A stretch of 64,000 nucleotides of DNA from Takakia lepidozioides (lineage: Eukaryota > Plantae > Bryophyta). The position numbers were made by a program, and so were the translations under genes. The notes below the pieces were generated by a model. The model saw only the letters and a program-made list of their open reading frames with translations. It had not been told where the DNA came from and made no database searches. The stretch lies in the NCBI GenBank assembly GCA_030704615.1, contig CM060733.1, positions 42,284,001-42,348,000 of the forward strand, given 5' to 3'. Shown here in pieces: positions 12,563 through 62,191 of this stretch. Position 1 is the stretch's first letter; every line of letters starts with the position of its first letter.

Positions 12563-12585
12563 GGGTTTAGGGTTTAGGGTTTAGG
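12563..12585 (+). repeat. Interstitial plant telomeric repeat, about 3 x TTTAGGG
   Basis: GGGTTTAGGGTTTAGGGTTTAGG read directly. Confidence 0.85.
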
Positions 12586-52299: not shown

Positions 52300-53282
52300 G
52301 GGGAGGTCACTCCCTATCTAGTTTCCTAGGCACGTGAGGCAAATAGGCATTTTCTATGGGGGTATTAATTTTATTTTCTGGATTTTTGGCCACCATATTA
52401 TTACATAATTTTGTAATATGACATATTTTCTTGTAGGCTATATTATTTATATTTTATAGCAGATAACAAATATTGGACACCCTATATTAACCTGAAAAAT
52501 AAAATAAAATAAAATACGGGGTAATGAATTTTTTATTTGCTGGAAACAAATTTATCCAAAGTAGATGCATCAGCATCATTTAAAGTATAAAAGTTTTGAG
52601 CAAAATCACATCTCATAGTAACTGAACTAATAATCGAATTTATATTTATCCACTTGCTGTCAGTTACATCATATTTGAATTTCAGATGCCCTCTAGATTT
52701 TGAGAAGTAGTTGAGAAGCACCATGATTGTTGTGGCTGGTTTGTTAAGGAGATCAACTGGTTGTCGAGAGACCTCCCACCTGCTCCATATCTTTCTGCTT
52801 ATTTTTTGTATTCTGCCTATCCACCATGTCTCTCAAAACCTATGGGCCGCCATGCTTGTGTTGCCATCCTTCCCTCTCAATCTACGCTTCTCCATTGTCA
52901 CGTCCTGCAAGCTTCAAAACCTATGGGCCACAATGCTTGCACCACTGAGCGCACAACCCTTTCTTTCTGTCTGTCTAGCACAATGTCACCACGAATTGCA
53001 GCCGACAGGAGAGAGGAAGCCTAAGGTTGTTGTGCACATGCGCCTACGCCCTCTCCGCTGCGTGTCACTGATCGACACGTGTCCATTTAATTTATCTTCA
53101 TCCTATATTAGTTTTAATTTTTTTGAAGAATCCGTCTTCATTTTGGACCCTATATTAATTTAAATGTGGTGCCGCCAATATATTAGTACCCTATAAATAT
53201 ATTCTAAATTTTATTTTCTCAGAATTTTGGGCACCCTATATTTTTTTGCACGTCAAGTGGTAATATTTGGAAGTGACCCCCC
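52300..53282 (-). mobile_element. Non-autonomous TIR DNA transposon of undetermined superfamily
   Basis: TIRs GGGAGGTCACTCCC / GGAAGTGACCCCCC, AT-rich subterminal repeats and a residual ORF end SRGHLKFKYDVTDSKWI. Confidence 0.65.
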
Positions 53283-53626
53283 TTTGGATTTCTTCTTTCT
53301 ATGGAAGATGAAAGGATGTGTCATGTACCATGCTGGAACTGAAACTGTTTCTCAGAACAAATGACATTGCTCCAAGAGTCTAGGTGTTTATCCTCATGGC
53401 ATTTTGTAGGACATTAGAGAACCAATATTTGTGCAGAGGTGAAGGGAAGTTAGAGTAACCGTTTGATTGCTTTTGCAAGAGATGGTGCTCGATGGCGGTG
53501 GCAAGGGATTCCCATTTCTCTCCAAACTGGTGTACCGAAGATGGAGGGTTGGCTGCCTCATCAGAATTCAGAAGAAAACTCGCCATGTCTGTCTGATTCG
53601 AGTTATGCCAGGAGCTCCTGAGCTTT

Positions 53627-54830
53627 TGGCGGTCGTGATTTTGATGTCATCAAACATGGAACCATAGTTCCGTAACCAGGACCGGAGGCTCTTTTCGGAG
53701 CCTACCCAGATGCCAAAGCCGTTGTCGATATAGCGCTTAAGATAAAGCAACTCTCGCTCCGATGGGCACACGTACTCCATGTACATCTCCAATCGACAAA
53801 GGAACAAACAAGCATAAACAACTGCAAAGTTGCTCCCCATCGCCGTCCCGCGAATTTGGTGCCAAAAACTATCATTGAACTCAAGGTAATGGTGTCTCAA
53901 GACTAATCCAGCGAGGGTCAGGATCAAGTCTTCTTTGTGTTTGGTGAAATTACCTCCAATAGCACATTCAAGCTCATACAAGCCAAGCTCGGTGATGATG
54001 CTGGGATACAGAGATTCCACGTCAAACGTAAAAAGAAGAGCATGCGAGGGGACCTCGAGTTGGGAAACCTCTCGAAAAAGCGTGAGAGAATCAACCAAAT
54101 GAGTGGGTTCCTTGAGAAGTACTGGAAGGAGTTGGTGATGGAGCCAAATTGAAGCATGCTCGAAGATGTAATTGTTGTAGGAACAAATGGGTCTTCCAGC
54201 AAGCACGGGTTTGTGTGGAATGAAGTATAAATCACAAGCTTGAAAGTCCATGGATGACCGAGGGCGTTGGCGGATGTAATTCCATTCTTTGGTGGAGATC
54301 GCAAACCTGTAGATTGGATGACAAGATAGCACTTCCAACCTCGACCAAAGTTCTTCCCACGATACGGAATCCACGGGACGATAAACTTCGGTGTCTGAGA
54401 GTTGCCGCATCGCCTCTTGCATGTACCAAGACTTGTCCATAAGCACAAGACCAAGATTTTTGTCGGCCGGCTTGATAACAAGGTCCGGATCCGACCTCAA
54501 TCTTTTGAGAGCAAGTCTCAAGTGTCTCGGCAGACAAGGTCGTGCATTCCGGGCGATTTGATCCAAACGGCTAGACAAAAGATCATTACCTTCTCGAATG
54601 ATGGCCTCGAGCGGTTGAGATTCCACTGGCGGATTGAATGATGGATTCGGAACGCGCCAAAGAGGAACCTCCTCGTTGTCTTTGCCGGAGAAGAACGTTT
54701 GCAACCTCAAGCTTCGAGCAAAATTGTTGAATTCGGTGATGATTGAAGATCGGGAAGGGGGAAGAGGACCAAGAATGTAATTGAGACCAAGGCCTAGGAG
54801 TTGTCGCTCCGTAAAGGAGAGAACCCTCTT
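53627..54830 (-). CDS. PLE reverse transcriptase, N-terminal and core part (inverted segment, 5'-truncated)
   Basis: Open frame from KRVLSFTERQLLGLGLNY through RT motifs to YIDNGFGIW...KITTA. Confidence 0.85.
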
Positions 54831-55492
54831 GCTATATCGACGACGACTTTGGCATCTGGGTAGGCTCCGAAAAAAGCCTCCAGTCCTGGTTACGGAACTA
54901 CGGTTCCATGTTTGATGGCATCAAAATCACGACCGCCATAAGCCCGACGTCCGCCGACATCTTGGATATCACATTCTTCAAAGGAGACGATTTCATCCAA
55001 ACTCGACGGCTCTCTATTAGATGTCATCAAAAAGCCCAGAACAAGTATCAATACTTGCCTTGGTCCTCGTGGCATCCACATCACCAAAAGAAAGATTTCG
55101 TCATCGACGAGCTCCAACGGTACGTAATACGAGAAAGCACCATCCAAGGGTTCAACCATTTGCGACTTTTGTTTTACAAACGTCTTCAAGCCCGAGGTTA
55201 TCCGGCGGCGTTCATCCGGAGTTGTTTTACCAAGATCTCCTACGACCTCAGATCCGTTCTACTCGACCAACAGACGCAACGCGTAGTTGAGGGTAAACGG
55301 GCCCCCCTTGTTCTTAAGCTCGACTACTCTTCGTACACTCGAGCTTTAAACTTGGGGGCCACCCTAAACCCTAGACTCTACGAGTTGCTTCAGCAAGTCC
55401 TGGAGCTTCGGTTTCTTCCTCGAGCAATGATTTGTTGGAGGAATCCGCGAAAGCTGAGTTCATTCTTAGTTAAATCTAGAATGATAGGATGA
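54831..55492 (+). CDS. PLE reverse transcriptase, C-terminal part (YIDD to thumb)
   Basis: YIDDDFGIWVGSEK...DILDITFF...KYQYLPWSSWHPHHQKK...NPRKLSSFLVKSRMIG followed by a stop. Confidence 0.85.
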
Positions 55493-55664
55493 TTTTGTAG
55501 TGCAAATGTCCCTAGCATTATTAATTTTGCCTCTTTGATAGCCTTAGTATTGATGTTAAAGTCAAAGGGTTCCAACAATTAATTTGGACCATTGACTAAT
55601 TAATGCAGTCTTGACTTGGAGGCTAAATTAGTGCTTTAGTGGCATTATTATTGCCTTGGGAATT

Positions 55665-55710
55665 ATCCCATATCGTTTGCACATAGTGAAGGTGCTTTTC
55701 TAGTATATAA
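55665..55710 (+). promoter_or_regulatory. Putative plant snRNA-type promoter (USE plus TATA)
   Basis: ATCCCATATCG (10/11 match to RTCCCACATCG) at 55665-55675 and TATATAA at 55704-55710, 28 bp apart. Confidence 0.45.
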
Positions 55711-55742
55711 GGATAGGCTTGGCTCTTAGGACTTCATCTCTT

Positions 55743-55798
55743 GGTGTTCCAGTGATGAGCTTGAGCAATCAAGCGAAACTTGTTTGGAATAAAACACC
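55743..55798 (+). ncRNA. Minimal type I hammerhead ribozyme-like motif (C3>G variant)
   Basis: GGTG-TTCCA-GTGATGA-GCTTGA(GCAA)TCAAGC-GAAAC-TT-GTT-TGGAA-TAAAA-CACC. Stems I and II pair and stem III is minimal, as in PLE-associated hammerheads. Confidence 0.6.
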
Positions 55799-56369
55799 TT
55801 AACTCTATTTGTGTCTCCACACTTAGAGAAGTTGAGAGTCTAGTCCTTGCCCGCCCGGGCAACTTGGATCGAAGGTCGAAGGGGTGCTCGGTTCCAAGGG
55901 GAATCCCAACCCTTGGATACTTCCGAGGCTTTTTTTCTTTCCAAAGCATGGGCGTATATAGCCTTCCGTTTTACGAACCTCTTTTTGAAGGTGGGGCATA
56001 TAAGTTTTCCAACTAGGGGTTGAGACTTGACCCTATGTTTGTGAGTGCCTTGAGCGCATGCTTGCCCATAGTGAGCAAGATTTTTGTCGCTAAACAAGGA
56101 GGAGCAAACATAAAAAAGCTTACGGTTGGAGCGAAAGTGCCTCATTCTTCAATTAGAGAACCTTATCTCGTGAGGGCGGGAGTCCTTGCATAAGACATAA
56201 TAGTCTTATAACATCCCTTTAGGCACGATAGGCGCACTTTGTATGCATTTGTCTTGGTTTTCGTTGCATTTGTATTTGGGTCCGAACCGGCCCCCCTTAA
56301 AATTTACTGTCTTTTTCCAGTATTTTTTCTACTTTTTGTTACCTTTGCAAGCCTTTGTTGACCACCTTG

Positions 56370-56389
56370 AACCCTAAACCCTAAACCCT
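56370..56389 (+). repeat. Telomeric repeat (CCCTAAA), about 3 units, at the PLE 3' end
   Basis: AACCCTAAACCCTAAACCCT read directly. Confidence 0.85.
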
Positions 56390-56644
56390 GGGACCTGCAA
56401 TTTGATGGGGTCATAGCCACTCCACTTTTGATTTGGAAATGGTGGGTCTTGGGACAAGCAAAATTGGATAAAGCTAGGTTTTAATTTGGTCAAACCAATT
56501 TTTTTCTCACTTTTTCTTTGGGCCCTGATATTTGAGGTCTGGGCCAATGGTATAATCTCACAATTGCCACGGTGCAAAGCCCCTACCCTCCCAGGTGTGC
56601 TGGGTAGCATTGTCGGTGGCTCCAAAGAAACAATCCATGGATCG

Positions 56645-57727
56645 AAGATTCTCTTTTTACGCTTAGCATCGAAGCGAGCCTTCCTTCGCCGTTGCAACTG
56701 CCTCAATGTGCTGAGCTGCTGCTTGTCGGATTTCATCTAGTCCTTCCAACATCTCGAGTCGTTCCTTTAATGACTCTGATTGTCACCAATCGTTCGGTAA
56801 TGGCCAATCGTAGAGATGGGATTTCTGTCTCGATTGGCATGATGAACTCTAACCCATAAACCAATGAAAAGGGGGTATGTCGAGTAGTTACCTTATGGGT
56901 TGTGTGAAATGCCCACACGGCCGAAATTAACTTGGTGTCCCAATCCCTTTTGTGCTCCCTGATTGTCTTGGAGAGAATGTTGCACAGGGTTTGGTTGGCG
57001 CGCTCCACCTGCCCACTCGTTTGTGGATGATAAAGGGTGGCATTGTGATGCTTGATGGAGAATGCCACCATCATTTCCTCGATGATGTCGTTGATGAAGT
57101 GAGATCCTCTGTCACTCACTATCTCTTTTGGGCATCCGAATCGGGAAATGATATATTTATAAATGAAAGAGGCGGTTACCTTTGCGTTGGCTCTCTTAAC
57201 CGCTTTGGCTTCTGCCCACTTGGTCAGATACTTAGTGGCTATAATGATGTAGCGATTTTGTCGACTCGATGCAGGGTGCACTTCCCCTACATAGTCGATC
57301 CCCCACTTCTCAAACGGAGCAAGGGGGAGAGTGGGACTAACGGCATTCCGAGCCTGTTATTTCGCTTGGCGTACCTTTGACAAGAGTCGCATTTTCGCAC
57401 ATGCATGTGCGCATCTTTGAACATGGAGGGCCAGTAGTATCCTACCCTCAAAGCCTTTTGCACTGTGAGCCGCCCTGCAAAGCGTCCTCCGCACATGCTA
57501 TCATGGGCTGACTCTAAAATCTGGGGAACCTCCTCCGGGGTGATGCATCGGCTCAAGAGTCTATCCAATCCCCTTCTATAAAATTGCCCTCCCACAAGAG
57601 CAAACTTCATGTTGCGCAGTCGAAGCCTTCGTCGCGCATGTCGATCCAATCCCGGGGGAAATTCCAGGGTGCTTAAATAATGAGCTAAGTGTTCATGGAC
57701 TCGGCTCATTTTTGGTATGTCATGCAT
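56645..57727 (-). mobile_element. Ty3/gypsy integrase fragment
   Basis: HDSMCGG...GYYWPSM...CDSCQR, YLTKWAEAKA, IVSDRGSHF, YHPQTSGQVERAN and TPFSLVYG. Confidence 0.92.
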
Positions 57728-59912: not shown

Positions 59913-62191
59913 TCACTCCTTGATAGAACGTAAGAAATCACATAACACGCGGTCAAACAAATCCTCCGCTTCTACCTGTCCAATATAGCCAATTAAACGA
60001 TTATCTTGGCATTCAGATTGGAGTTTAGCTGGCTTCTTTGCAGGATAGGCAACTACCAAGCTGATGCAACCATCTTTGCATGCGGCAAGCACCCTCGTTT
60101 TGGACTCGGAACTATTCTTGTACATCTGTTCCGGATCTGTAGTTGCCACTGCTCTAGCCCACTGCACCTCAGATCGCAGCTTCAGTTGACAGAAGACGGA
60201 ATCTTCAAATTCCCAAGTCTCACAACAAAAAGAACATCAGCTCCAGATCTGTCGTCAAAAATGAGGCATGGCGGACGAGATTTCTCTTCAGCATCAAGAA
60301 ATTTACTTACGGTGTGGATCCTATATGACTCCCTCCACACTCCTTCACCTTCACCGGTAATCGTTGGCTTGTCCCTTGCGAATTTTGGAGGCAGGGTTGC
60401 ATCCTTGAAACAGCACATATCGGCCAACAATTTTGTGCCGTCAAACAGCTTGGCCACATGAACTGTGAAAAGTTTCTCCCATGCCCTACCCATTGCACTG
60501 GGATCATCCTTGCAATCAACCATGTAGTCTTTGAGTGATTTCTCAAATGAATGGTTGTTCGTCAAGTAGTTCATGATGCTATGATGGACTGTCGGTTCGA
60601 CTATAGAGAAAGTGAATTGGGAACCTGTTGAATGGTGTAGCTGTCCAAGGCCACACTCGAGCAAAGTCATATCTCCGTCCGTTGAAACGGTATGTTCTCC
60701 CCTCCCTGCATAGGCAAAGGAGGTTCCTATTCTTTGCACCAAGGAAGCACCATTGAATGATTCTTCTTTCAGGACAAATGTGCCTTTTGCTCCACACAGA
60801 GCGCTCACAGCATAATAAATGGAAGTGCTGTCATTGGTGTCGCTTGTGATCTCCTTGAAATAGTTGTCTACTACGGTTATATCCCATCTTCCTCCAGCCT
60901 TCCTCAGAAGGCGCTCGACACAACTTACCAAACACCTTCGACGGCCTCTGAACTTTTCCAGCAGATACTGGGCATTGTCCTCCATATGATCATCCTCTAG
61001 CTTCAGGTACTCGCTGCAGAATTTCAGAACCTGACGCACATCTGTCCATGAAGAAAATGGAGCAGAAGAAAATTGAACCGGGCCACCACCCCCTTCTTTT
61101 GCAATCAGCGAACCTATGTCCGCTTCCAGCTTCAAAAAGCTGACACCTGTACCAGCAACAAATACTTTCTGCTTTGGCAACGCCGTAGATGGCCCCACTA
61201 GGGCTTTGATCAACGGAGAAAAAATGGACCTTAGCTCTTTCGTCTCGGGGGATTCATAGTCATTTACATTTTTCCTTCCCAACACCTGCGCTTCATCCAG
61301 AACTACAGTGAAAGTGCCAACCTTCCCCTCTAAATCCGTCCACAGTTTTTCTATCCTAGCATTTAGCCCCTCTGAATCTTCCAGGGAAGTAACCACGTTA
61401 AAAAGTTTCCGAGTAAGCACATCATATAGATCGTTACGATCTGCACCAAGGAAAGCACGGAATTGCACCTGGAGCATGAGCCATTGCAGAGGACTCAAAT
61501 CAGGAATTTCTTGGTGACAAAATTCCAAGATTAACAACCTTGAAAGAATGGCACACCTCATACGTTTCATCACATTCCTGTGATTCATTGCCTTATCGAC
61601 CTCTATCTCGTGAGAACTCACAGAGGCGACATCATCTGACCCACCGTTTCCTTTGGTTTTAGCTGTCCAAAAAAAACCCCACTTCTCTGCAAGCAGCTCG
61701 TAAAGAAACCGAGTTTTCCCACTCCCACTCACTCCAACAACTGGCACAACACCAGTCGAGCCATCATTCGCTCGTTCCCACAAATCACCAACATCTTCAG
61801 TCCAACGAGCAGTTAATTTATCCAGTAAAATGCTTGGATAACCACGGTGGTCAAGTGGCACACCGTTCTGTATAGACAAATTGCACCCCATCTTTTTGAA
61901 CGTGTCCAAAAACCCAGAAAATTTCAATTTCCATTCTTGCATAACCACCTTCACTGATTCTGTAAGCAAAACCCACACACTTTCCGTCACTCCTGACAGA
62001 TCCATGTATCAAAAATAAGAGCATCCTATCTTGCAAATAATTGAACAATACAAAAGATACACCAACAAAGCCTATGACCAAAGAAAATGCAAAGAGAAGG
62101 GGAACATGGAAGGGAAGGCCAAGTAACAGAGTAGCTCTACCTGAAAACCCGTTTCCAGAGGTTTTCAATCTCTTCGCAGATCTCTCTCCCC
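59913..62191 (-). pseudogene. Crinkler (CRN)-like P-loop NTPase plus PD-(D/E)xK restriction-endonuclease-fold gene with one frameshift
   Basis: Walker A GVSGSGKT and Walker B FTVVLDEAQ. C-terminus MGRAWEKL...GADVLFVVRLGNLKIP/VFCQLKLR...CISLVVAYP is restored by correcting a 1-bp deletion at ~60197. An in-phase upstream exon (62141-62191) and intron (61993-62140) are present. Confidence 0.75.

Follow-up and report, generated by a model that had tools for sequence, protein, structure and literature searches.

A telomere-tailed Penelope-like retroelement with an inverted 5' part at an internal site of the Takakia lepidozioides genome

We analysed a 64-kb stretch of the Takakia lepidozioides genome (64,000 nucleotides (nt) of contig CM060733.1, positions 42,284,001 to 42,348,000; hereafter, the window) that contains, at 53619-56389, a copy of a Penelope-like element (PLE). 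The reverse transcriptase (RT) gene of this copy is divided between the two strands of the DNA. The original prediction had described a collinear element starting at 53627, with all the RT motifs laid out on a single strand. The motifs are present as listed, but the layout is different: IKPADK, FDVESLYPSI, GTAMGS and one YID(N) are encoded on the minus strand, and YIDD and SWHP on the plus strand. Because the motifs are spread over the two strands, 53627 is not the 5' end of the element; this coordinate corresponds to the outer (3'-side) end of an inverted segment.

Layout of the copy and of the canonical unit

The copy consists of an inverted 5' segment and a direct 3' segment of the RT open reading frame (ORF), which meet at 54831-54836, followed by a tail and a short telomeric tract:

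53619-54836, minus strand: inverted 5' segment of the PLE RT, recognized by translation and alignment to relatives of 580-630 amino acids (aa)
54831-55492, plus strand: direct 3' segment of the RT ORF, recognized by translation and alignment to relatives
53622-53734, minus strand: overlap arm 1, 113 nt, member of an inverted-repeat pair, 94% complementary to arm 2
54831-54943, plus strand: overlap arm 2, 113 nt, member of the same inverted-repeat pair, 94% complementary to arm 1
54831-54836, strand not assigned: inversion junction GCTATA, the inner ends of both segments, with 6 nt of microhomology and no filler bases
55493-56369, plus strand: 3' untranslated tail, covered by canonical contigs from public sequencing runs (X5 record 20, X6 records 26 and 27)
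56370-56389, plus strand: 3' terminal reverse-complement telomeric tract AACCCTAAACCCTAAACCCT, 20 nt, two full CCCTAAA units and CCCT

The inverted segment contains a reading frame of ~405 codons, open on the minus strand from 54836 down to ~53622, which encodes, in order, YSKRVLSFTERQLLGLGL (the N-terminal motif), IKPADKNLG, FDVESLYPSI, GTAMGS, YIDNGFGIW and ..DIKITTA. The 5' truncation of the copy, which had been anticipated, is located at 54836, where this segment is cut within the N-terminal motif; its other end, at ~53619-53622, is internal to the element. The direct segment encodes YIDDDFGIW, ..DGIKITTA.., the thumb YLPWSSWHPHHQK (with SWHP) and the C-terminal ..CWRNPRKLSSFLVKSRMIG, and terminates with a stop codon at 55490-55492. 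In the coordinates of the element, the direct segment starts at the YIDD codons, and the end of the inverted segment lies 113 nt to the 3' side of this point. The non-coding stretch that follows the RT stop codon measures ~880 nt, in agreement with the ~0.9 kb that had been given for it, and ends in telomeric repeats on the sense strand, with two full units and CCCT against the claimed number of about three. In shuffled sequence, 0.00 occurrences of the exact telomeric 18-mer are expected. The only other short tract of tandem telomeric repeats in the window, at 12563-12585, consists of ~3.3 TTTAGGG units on the plus strand with CTGATG on either side, has no connection to RT sequence in the window, and resembles a small patch of telomeric sequence flanked by a target duplication of 6 bp.

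The contigs of four public runs were aligned to positions 52300-57700 of the window, and their summed depth rises ~10x at ~53600. Four matches to the window were obtained with a contig of 4053 nt (X5 record 20, from a plant metagenome run), namely, 53683-54836 on one strand, and 54883-55311, 55313-55975 and 55972-56379 on the other strand; the stretch 55313-56379 is covered by other contigs as well. The first and last bases of this contig are adjacent in the element, that is, the contig is circularly permuted. In such assemblies, units that are in tandem or flanked by repeats take this form, and the collinear unit of ~4 kb is probably a tandem one. Because the RT is collinear in this contig (with the joint at 53683/54883), the inversion is particular to the window copy. 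Both this contig and an independent one (X6 record 27) track the window exactly up to 56379, within the telomeric tract, and continue with TTTTTTCCATGGCG.., which is the beginning of the next unit. Thus, both the tail and its telomeric end are parts of the element, and the predicted organization, a unit without an endonuclease that ends in reverse-complement telomeric repeats, is borne out by other copies that contain 55493-56379 and end within the same repeat. The tract in the window extends 10 nt beyond the canonical unit border (56379).

The window copy differs from the canonical contig at ~3% of the positions, mostly with T/A in the window for C/G in the reads, and its tail lacks at least 252 bp that are present in canonical copies at ~55972-55975, with a contig loose end at 55972. 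Some contigs join or leave the RT sequence at 53797/55019, 53865 and 55089, and one of these joints would skip ~250 nt of the RT; the joints could reflect variants with a deletion, further truncated copies or a gap resembling an intron.

Units of similar organization were traced in related sequences. Three of these (L002, L003 and L004) are rotations of one ~3.9-kb unit in which ORF1, immediately preceded by AAACCCTAAACC, is combined with the RT and a tail of 0.7 kb; in another relative (L001), CCCTAAACCCTAAA occupies the position ahead of ORF1. The telomeric repeat likewise stands at the unit borders in L001, L003 and the Selaginella sequence L005. In the latter, a homologous RT has CCCTAAA arrays of the sense strand on both sides, and a canonical hammerhead lies upstream. 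This layout agrees with the published telomere-associated, endonuclease-deficient PLEs of that plant (PMC4209133, PMC12477314, PMC8557442). In a Cryptomeria contig (P0005), RT genes are repeated in tandem every 4.33 kb, and head-to-tail arrays seem to be general for the plant lineage. The Cryptomeria array adjoins a caulimovirus-like gene (Pfam MP and RT_RNaseH). Judging from the sequences compared, the family unit is ~4 kb long and comprises an upstream ORF1, an RT of ~600 aa without GIY-YIG and a ~1.1-kb tail with a hammerhead motif. The short CCCTAAA tract that ends each unit is predicted to be one that can pair with G-rich 3' ends.

A further telomere-like stretch is found within the RT ORF, ~120 nt before the stop codon:

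55361-55373, plus strand: telomere-like stretch ACCCTAAACCCTA, coding for TLNP

The corresponding position is occupied by CCCTAAA in L002 (2125), L003 (3093) and L004 (2048), and by two full telomeric units in the Selaginella sequence (7616-7631 of L005), and the conservation extends to several plant families. It could be a second candidate pairing site for G-rich ends.

RT lineage and the hammerhead-like motif

The two RT pieces were searched separately, as unjoined protein fragments. For the minus-strand piece, 104 protein matches were obtained, nearly all of 540-690 aa. The named matches include uncharacterised proteins of Cryptomeria japonica, Selaginella moellendorffii and Ginkgo (44-46% identity, E 1e-86 to 1e-103; 46% between the window piece and Selaginella XP_024523476.1), and unnamed proteins from Logan/ENA assemblies reach 63% identity, with E values down to 1e-121. 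In their precomputed Pfam annotation, the relatives carry DUF8422 and HTH_animal, and in some cases RVT_1. The two RT pieces themselves gave no match in Pfam or NCBIfam, so the family assignment rests on the homologues and their precomputed domains; a local Pfam search of the full-length relatives yields at most a weak RVT_1 match. The motifs that can be read in the translation, LSFTERQLLGLGL, PADKNLG, FDVESLYPSI, GTAMGS, YIDD and SWHP, are as predicted for an RT of the PLE type. When a profile of 29 relatives was compared with PDB, it matched RTs, among them the Tribolium TERT (E 7.5e-4). Outside the family, the named Atlas clusters closest to it contain HTH_animal RTs of rotifers and nematodes, and a weaker lead (score 0.86) is a cluster of 1005-aa proteins with GIY-YIG and RVT_1.

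The claim that the RT ORF stops at 55492 without a GIY-YIG endonuclease domain holds. The full-length relatives from Selaginella, Cryptomeria, Ginkgo and Closterium (580-630 aa) end within a few residues of the window stop, just after CWRNPRxLxSxLV, with no further domain in the alignment. There is no Pfam match to GIY-YIG in the ORFs of the window tail, which match no Pfam family at all, or in the ORF1s of the relatives (434 aa in L003). Among the best 120 matches of the profile protein search, no relative bears a GIY-YIG domain, and the family is thus not linked there to endonuclease-containing PLEs. The reservation in the original prediction that such a domain might be located at the N-terminus is weakened as well. 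In the full-length relatives, the RT ORF starts only ~20-50 aa ahead of the N-terminal motif in which the window copy is cut; these short N-termini and the Pfam-blank ORF1s, both read in the relatives only, argue against an N-terminal GIY-YIG, with the 5' region of the window family itself (~1.1 kb) remaining unread.

In a quick phylogenetic tree (SH-aLRT support only, unlabelled relatives), the window RT belongs to a well-supported land-plant group in which Selaginella is the earliest branch; the gymnosperm sequences cluster together and Closterium is outside, all within one streptophyte clade. On these sequence grounds, the window element is probably an endonuclease-deficient PLE of the plant lineage first seen in Selaginella, with a biology of the Athena/Coprina type by likeness.

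The tail also contains a motif that was identified by pattern search and a permissive Rfam search:

55743-55800, plus strand: type I hammerhead-like motif, decayed

It consists of helix I GGUGUUCCA with UGGAA..ACACC, the core gUGAUGA, a 6-bp helix II and then CGAAAC-UUGU-U, and folds into helix I and the 6-bp helix II with an open core. Nowhere else in the window, on either strand, does the sequence fit a loose hammerhead pattern in which helix II has at least 4 bp. The decay is apparent at core position C3, which is a G (GUGAUGA vs the expected CUGAUGA), and in the helix III word ACUUGU, which is no longer palindromic. In L001 and L002, the core at the same place is intact and the helix III word is the palindromic ACUAGU; the word in Selaginella is ACCGGU. 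The permissive Rfam search assigns the window motif to HH9 with 12 bits only and the L001 core to Hammerhead_1 with 19.2 bits (E 0.056), which is under the gathering score; at gathering thresholds, Rfam finds no ribozymes in the window or in L001-L003. As all the Rfam scores are below the gathering thresholds, the resemblance is supported by conservation across families, and the motif is not a demonstrated ribozyme.

Flanking sequence and origin of the inversion

The copy is interstitial. Its neighbours are a remnant of a Ty3/gypsy integrase (Integrase_H2C2 and rve; 56736-57727, minus strand), which directly follows the PLE, and, on the opposite side, other repeats; no telomeric array is present in the 64 kb of the window. 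A location at a chromosome end, for which the original prediction proposed a check, thus does not apply to this copy, a result that concerns the single copy and not the family as a whole. From 56391 on, the sequence belongs to a different high-copy repeat, and contig loose ends are found before 56391. The ~250 bp next to the telomeric end (56391-56640) show a summed contig depth as high as that of the PLE, have boundaries of their own (loose ends at 56391, 56574 and 56636-56638) and overlap a reading frame that continues from the gypsy integrase. The PLE seems to lie inside or at a broken end of the downstream gypsy long terminal repeat element. At the left edge, a contig with a paralogous flank (X6 record 22) follows the window to 53627, and homology to the element extends to 53619-53622, an overlap of up to 9 nt. 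Neither a direct repeat between the flanks nor a target-site duplication was seen by eye, and tblastn and blastn searches of the 64-kb window revealed no further copies of RT, tail or flanks. The window contains no match to any loose-end string of the reads, so the empty site was not reconstructed. Further downstream (60185-62005, minus strand), the window contains a 607-aa ORF with weak matches to AAA ATPases.

We consider it moderately likely that the copy, which is old, ~3% diverged and 5'-truncated, was made at a double-strand break by an event resembling twin priming, the process to which the 5' inversion of LINE-1 (L1) insertions is reportedly due (Ostertag and Kazazian 2001). The features of this type that are present in the window copy are the inverted 5' part, the adjacent breakpoints, the short duplication and the microhomology at the junction. 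In the absence of an endonuclease of its own, the element would most simply have obtained two primers from the two sides of a double-strand break. The process would have started with a chromosomal break inside or beside the Ty3/gypsy element. The right-hand 3' end would have primed at the telomeric tail of the RNA, and copying would have proceeded back to the YIDD region; the left-hand 3' end would have paired, by a few bases, with an internal RNA site 113 nt further 3', and been extended toward the 5' end of the RNA. Up to 9 nt at the left edge could have been available for this pairing between the primer and the RNA. Joining of the two complementary DNA (cDNA) ends at the 6-nt microhomology would then yield a 5'-truncated copy with an inverted 5' part, as in L1 twin priming, which would afterwards have decayed by ~3%, mostly through C-to-T changes.

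The overlap arms bear on the timing of the event. They differ at 7 of the 113 sites, six of the seven differences being transitions, which matches two copies that have each decayed by ~3%, so that arms and insertion are of about the same age. Two separate head-to-head insertions, the inverted one of which later lost its 3' part through a deletion, would give a similar picture, and inverted, 5'-truncated copies beside PLE units are indeed common (PMC8557442). We regard such a history as unlikely, however. The usual inverted partner of a PLE keeps the 3' end of the element outermost, whereas here the outer edge (~53622) is an internal position of the RT; this edge is only 113 nt away from the start of the direct copy in a 4-kb unit, which has a chance of roughly 5% if the insertions were independent; and the divergence of the arms fits a single age.

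The inversion junction is bounded on both sides: the homology of the inverted segment to canonical contigs stops at 54836 in two of these (X5 record 20 and X6 record 24), the public-run contigs that match 53683-54836 continuing past this point with other sequence, and the homology of the arm of the direct segment starts at 54831. Antisense cDNAs ending at 54836 and 54831 would have complementary 3' ends (GCTATA). A 6-nt microhomology (54831-54836) together with a short duplicated overlap is typical of replication-based inverted duplications, too, and the copy might have been collinear and 5'-truncated at first, to be rearranged later by break repair or replication template switching (microhomology-mediated inverted duplication). 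We find this improbable: it needs two further breakpoints within the element, one of them exactly at the point of the 5' truncation; the flanking DNA was neither inverted nor duplicated along; and the ~6% divergence of the arms, twice the copy's own decay, places the event near the time of insertion. In a fold-back (snap-back cDNA) origin, the inverted part would repeat the region of the direct part; here it corresponds mostly to sequence located 5' of that region, and such an origin was therefore rejected.

The right-hand end raises the question of what the primer was. The original prediction assumed telomere-primed insertion at a break or at an interstitial telomeric seed, and a seed of the latter kind is not found in the flank, there being no telomeric sequence beyond 56390; priming may have taken place on an end healed by telomerase. 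In such a scheme, the RNA tail would have paired with a telomeric seed at the break, either a telomerase-added or an interstitial TTTAGGG tract, that primed reverse transcription. The excess of the 20-nt tract over the canonical border (56379) by 10 nt speaks for a seed, as do the position of the Selaginella units between long telomeric arrays and the second short telomeric patch in the window (12563-12585). Nevertheless, we view it as a tentative possibility only, given that the tract gives way at 56391 to the flanking repeat, which brings no further telomeric sequence, and that a source copy with a longer tail would explain the extra 10 nt equally well. A telomeric seed is also compatible with the twin-priming-like origin and differs from it only in the nature of the right-hand primer.

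Several points weigh against the twin-priming-like origin at a double-strand break. It is drawn from one copy, and a recurrent mechanism would be hypothetical. The paralogous flank sequences do not join each other, and the pre-insertion site was not recovered, so a deletion at the target cannot be told from an unrelated later rearrangement. The microhomology at the left junction comes from a single 172-nt contig of ~93% identity. PLEs are known for complex tandem and inverted insertions for which the mechanism is undefined (PMC8557442), and another, PLE-specific route could thus give the same picture. The quick tree, built from unlabelled relatives, does not name the clade, be it Coprina or another lineage without an endonuclease. 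Finally, no record that bridges the window's own junctions is among the pieces listed. This would also fit an artefact of assembly in a high-copy repeat, the element being highly repeated in the read sets, where it collapses into short contigs. Such an artefact is, nonetheless, very improbable: the arms are not identical, with 7 differences over the 113 sites, and neither of them is identical to the canonical sequence; the segments meet seamlessly, at a microhomology; and the flanks are of lower copy number on both sides.

Relation to known elements and implications

Endonuclease-deficient, telomere-associated PLEs with ribozymes are on record for Selaginella moellendorffii (Gladyshev and Arkhipova 2007, as cited in PMC4209133, PMC8557442 and PMC12477314). 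The Selaginella elements resemble the family described here in the ~600-aa RT with the same end point, the absence of GIY-YIG, the upstream ORF1, the sense-strand CCCTAAA at the unit borders and, in the form of a decayed hammerhead-like motif in the window copy, the type I hammerhead in the non-coding part. In contrast to these, the window element belongs to another family in another host, the unit borders carry 1-3 repeats rather than arrays, the hammerhead-like motif is 0.6 kb away from the telomeric tract, and the copy itself is solitary, inverted and internal.

The Athena elements, or Terminons, of bdelloid rotifers and the Coprina elements of fungi and protists likewise lack an endonuclease, carry reverse-complement telomeric repeats that are thought to pair with G-rich overhangs, and have hammerheads nearby (PMC8557442, PMC12477314). 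The window family shares the absence of an endonuclease and the reverse-complement telomeric repeats, and the window copy has a decayed hammerhead-like motif in its tail. The difference is that the elements of these groups are mostly terminal, with repeats that are described as immediately adjacent to the ribozyme. Endonuclease-less PLEs of the green lineage are also represented by Chlamys PLE-X, offshoots, in Selaginella and Chara, of PLEs with an N-terminal endonuclease; PLE-X of Selaginella target the 28S ribosomal DNA, and Chlamys RTs have a CxC motif and an insertion (IFD) between motifs A and B (PMC8557442). In the window element, the spacing between A and B is ~55 aa by eye, and no CxC is seen in the short N-termini of the relatives. 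Both observations argue against the Chlamys/Naiad type, which was compared by its description only (PMC8557442).

The likeness to L1 twin priming lies in the direct 3' part and the inverted 5' part, with adjacent breakpoints, a short duplication and microhomology at the junction. L1 makes staggered nicks of its own, which leave target-site duplications. In contrast, the window element has no endonuclease, both primers would be ends of a pre-existing break, and no target-site duplication was seen.

Elements of this kind, with the logic of the telomeric tail, have been known since the description of the Selaginella elements in 2007. The new part is the inversion, which rests on one copy. Judging by titles and abstracts, the papers that a full-text search turned up on twin priming and Penelope do not appear to deal with PLE inversion. 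If such inverted copies recur in the genome, they would be the first signature of the twin-priming type described for PLEs.

PLEs without an endonuclease are the closest retroelement relatives of telomerase. We suggest, as a tentative possibility, that telomere-tailed PLEs of this kind may patch internal double-strand breaks by using both broken ends as primers, one at the telomeric tail and the other at an internal site of the RNA. If this is true, a 5'-inverted copy would be the diagnostic scar of an ancient break repair by a relative of telomerase.

Endonuclease-deficient PLEs have been called rare in plants, with Selaginella as the example (PMC12477314). Together with its relatives from conifers, from Ginkgo and from a charophyte alga, the locus described here lends further support to a wide distribution of the lineage among streptophytes, and the single streptophyte clade in the quick tree would fit vertical inheritance. 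The inverted structure offers a testable hint of how elements without an endonuclease may enter internal sites.

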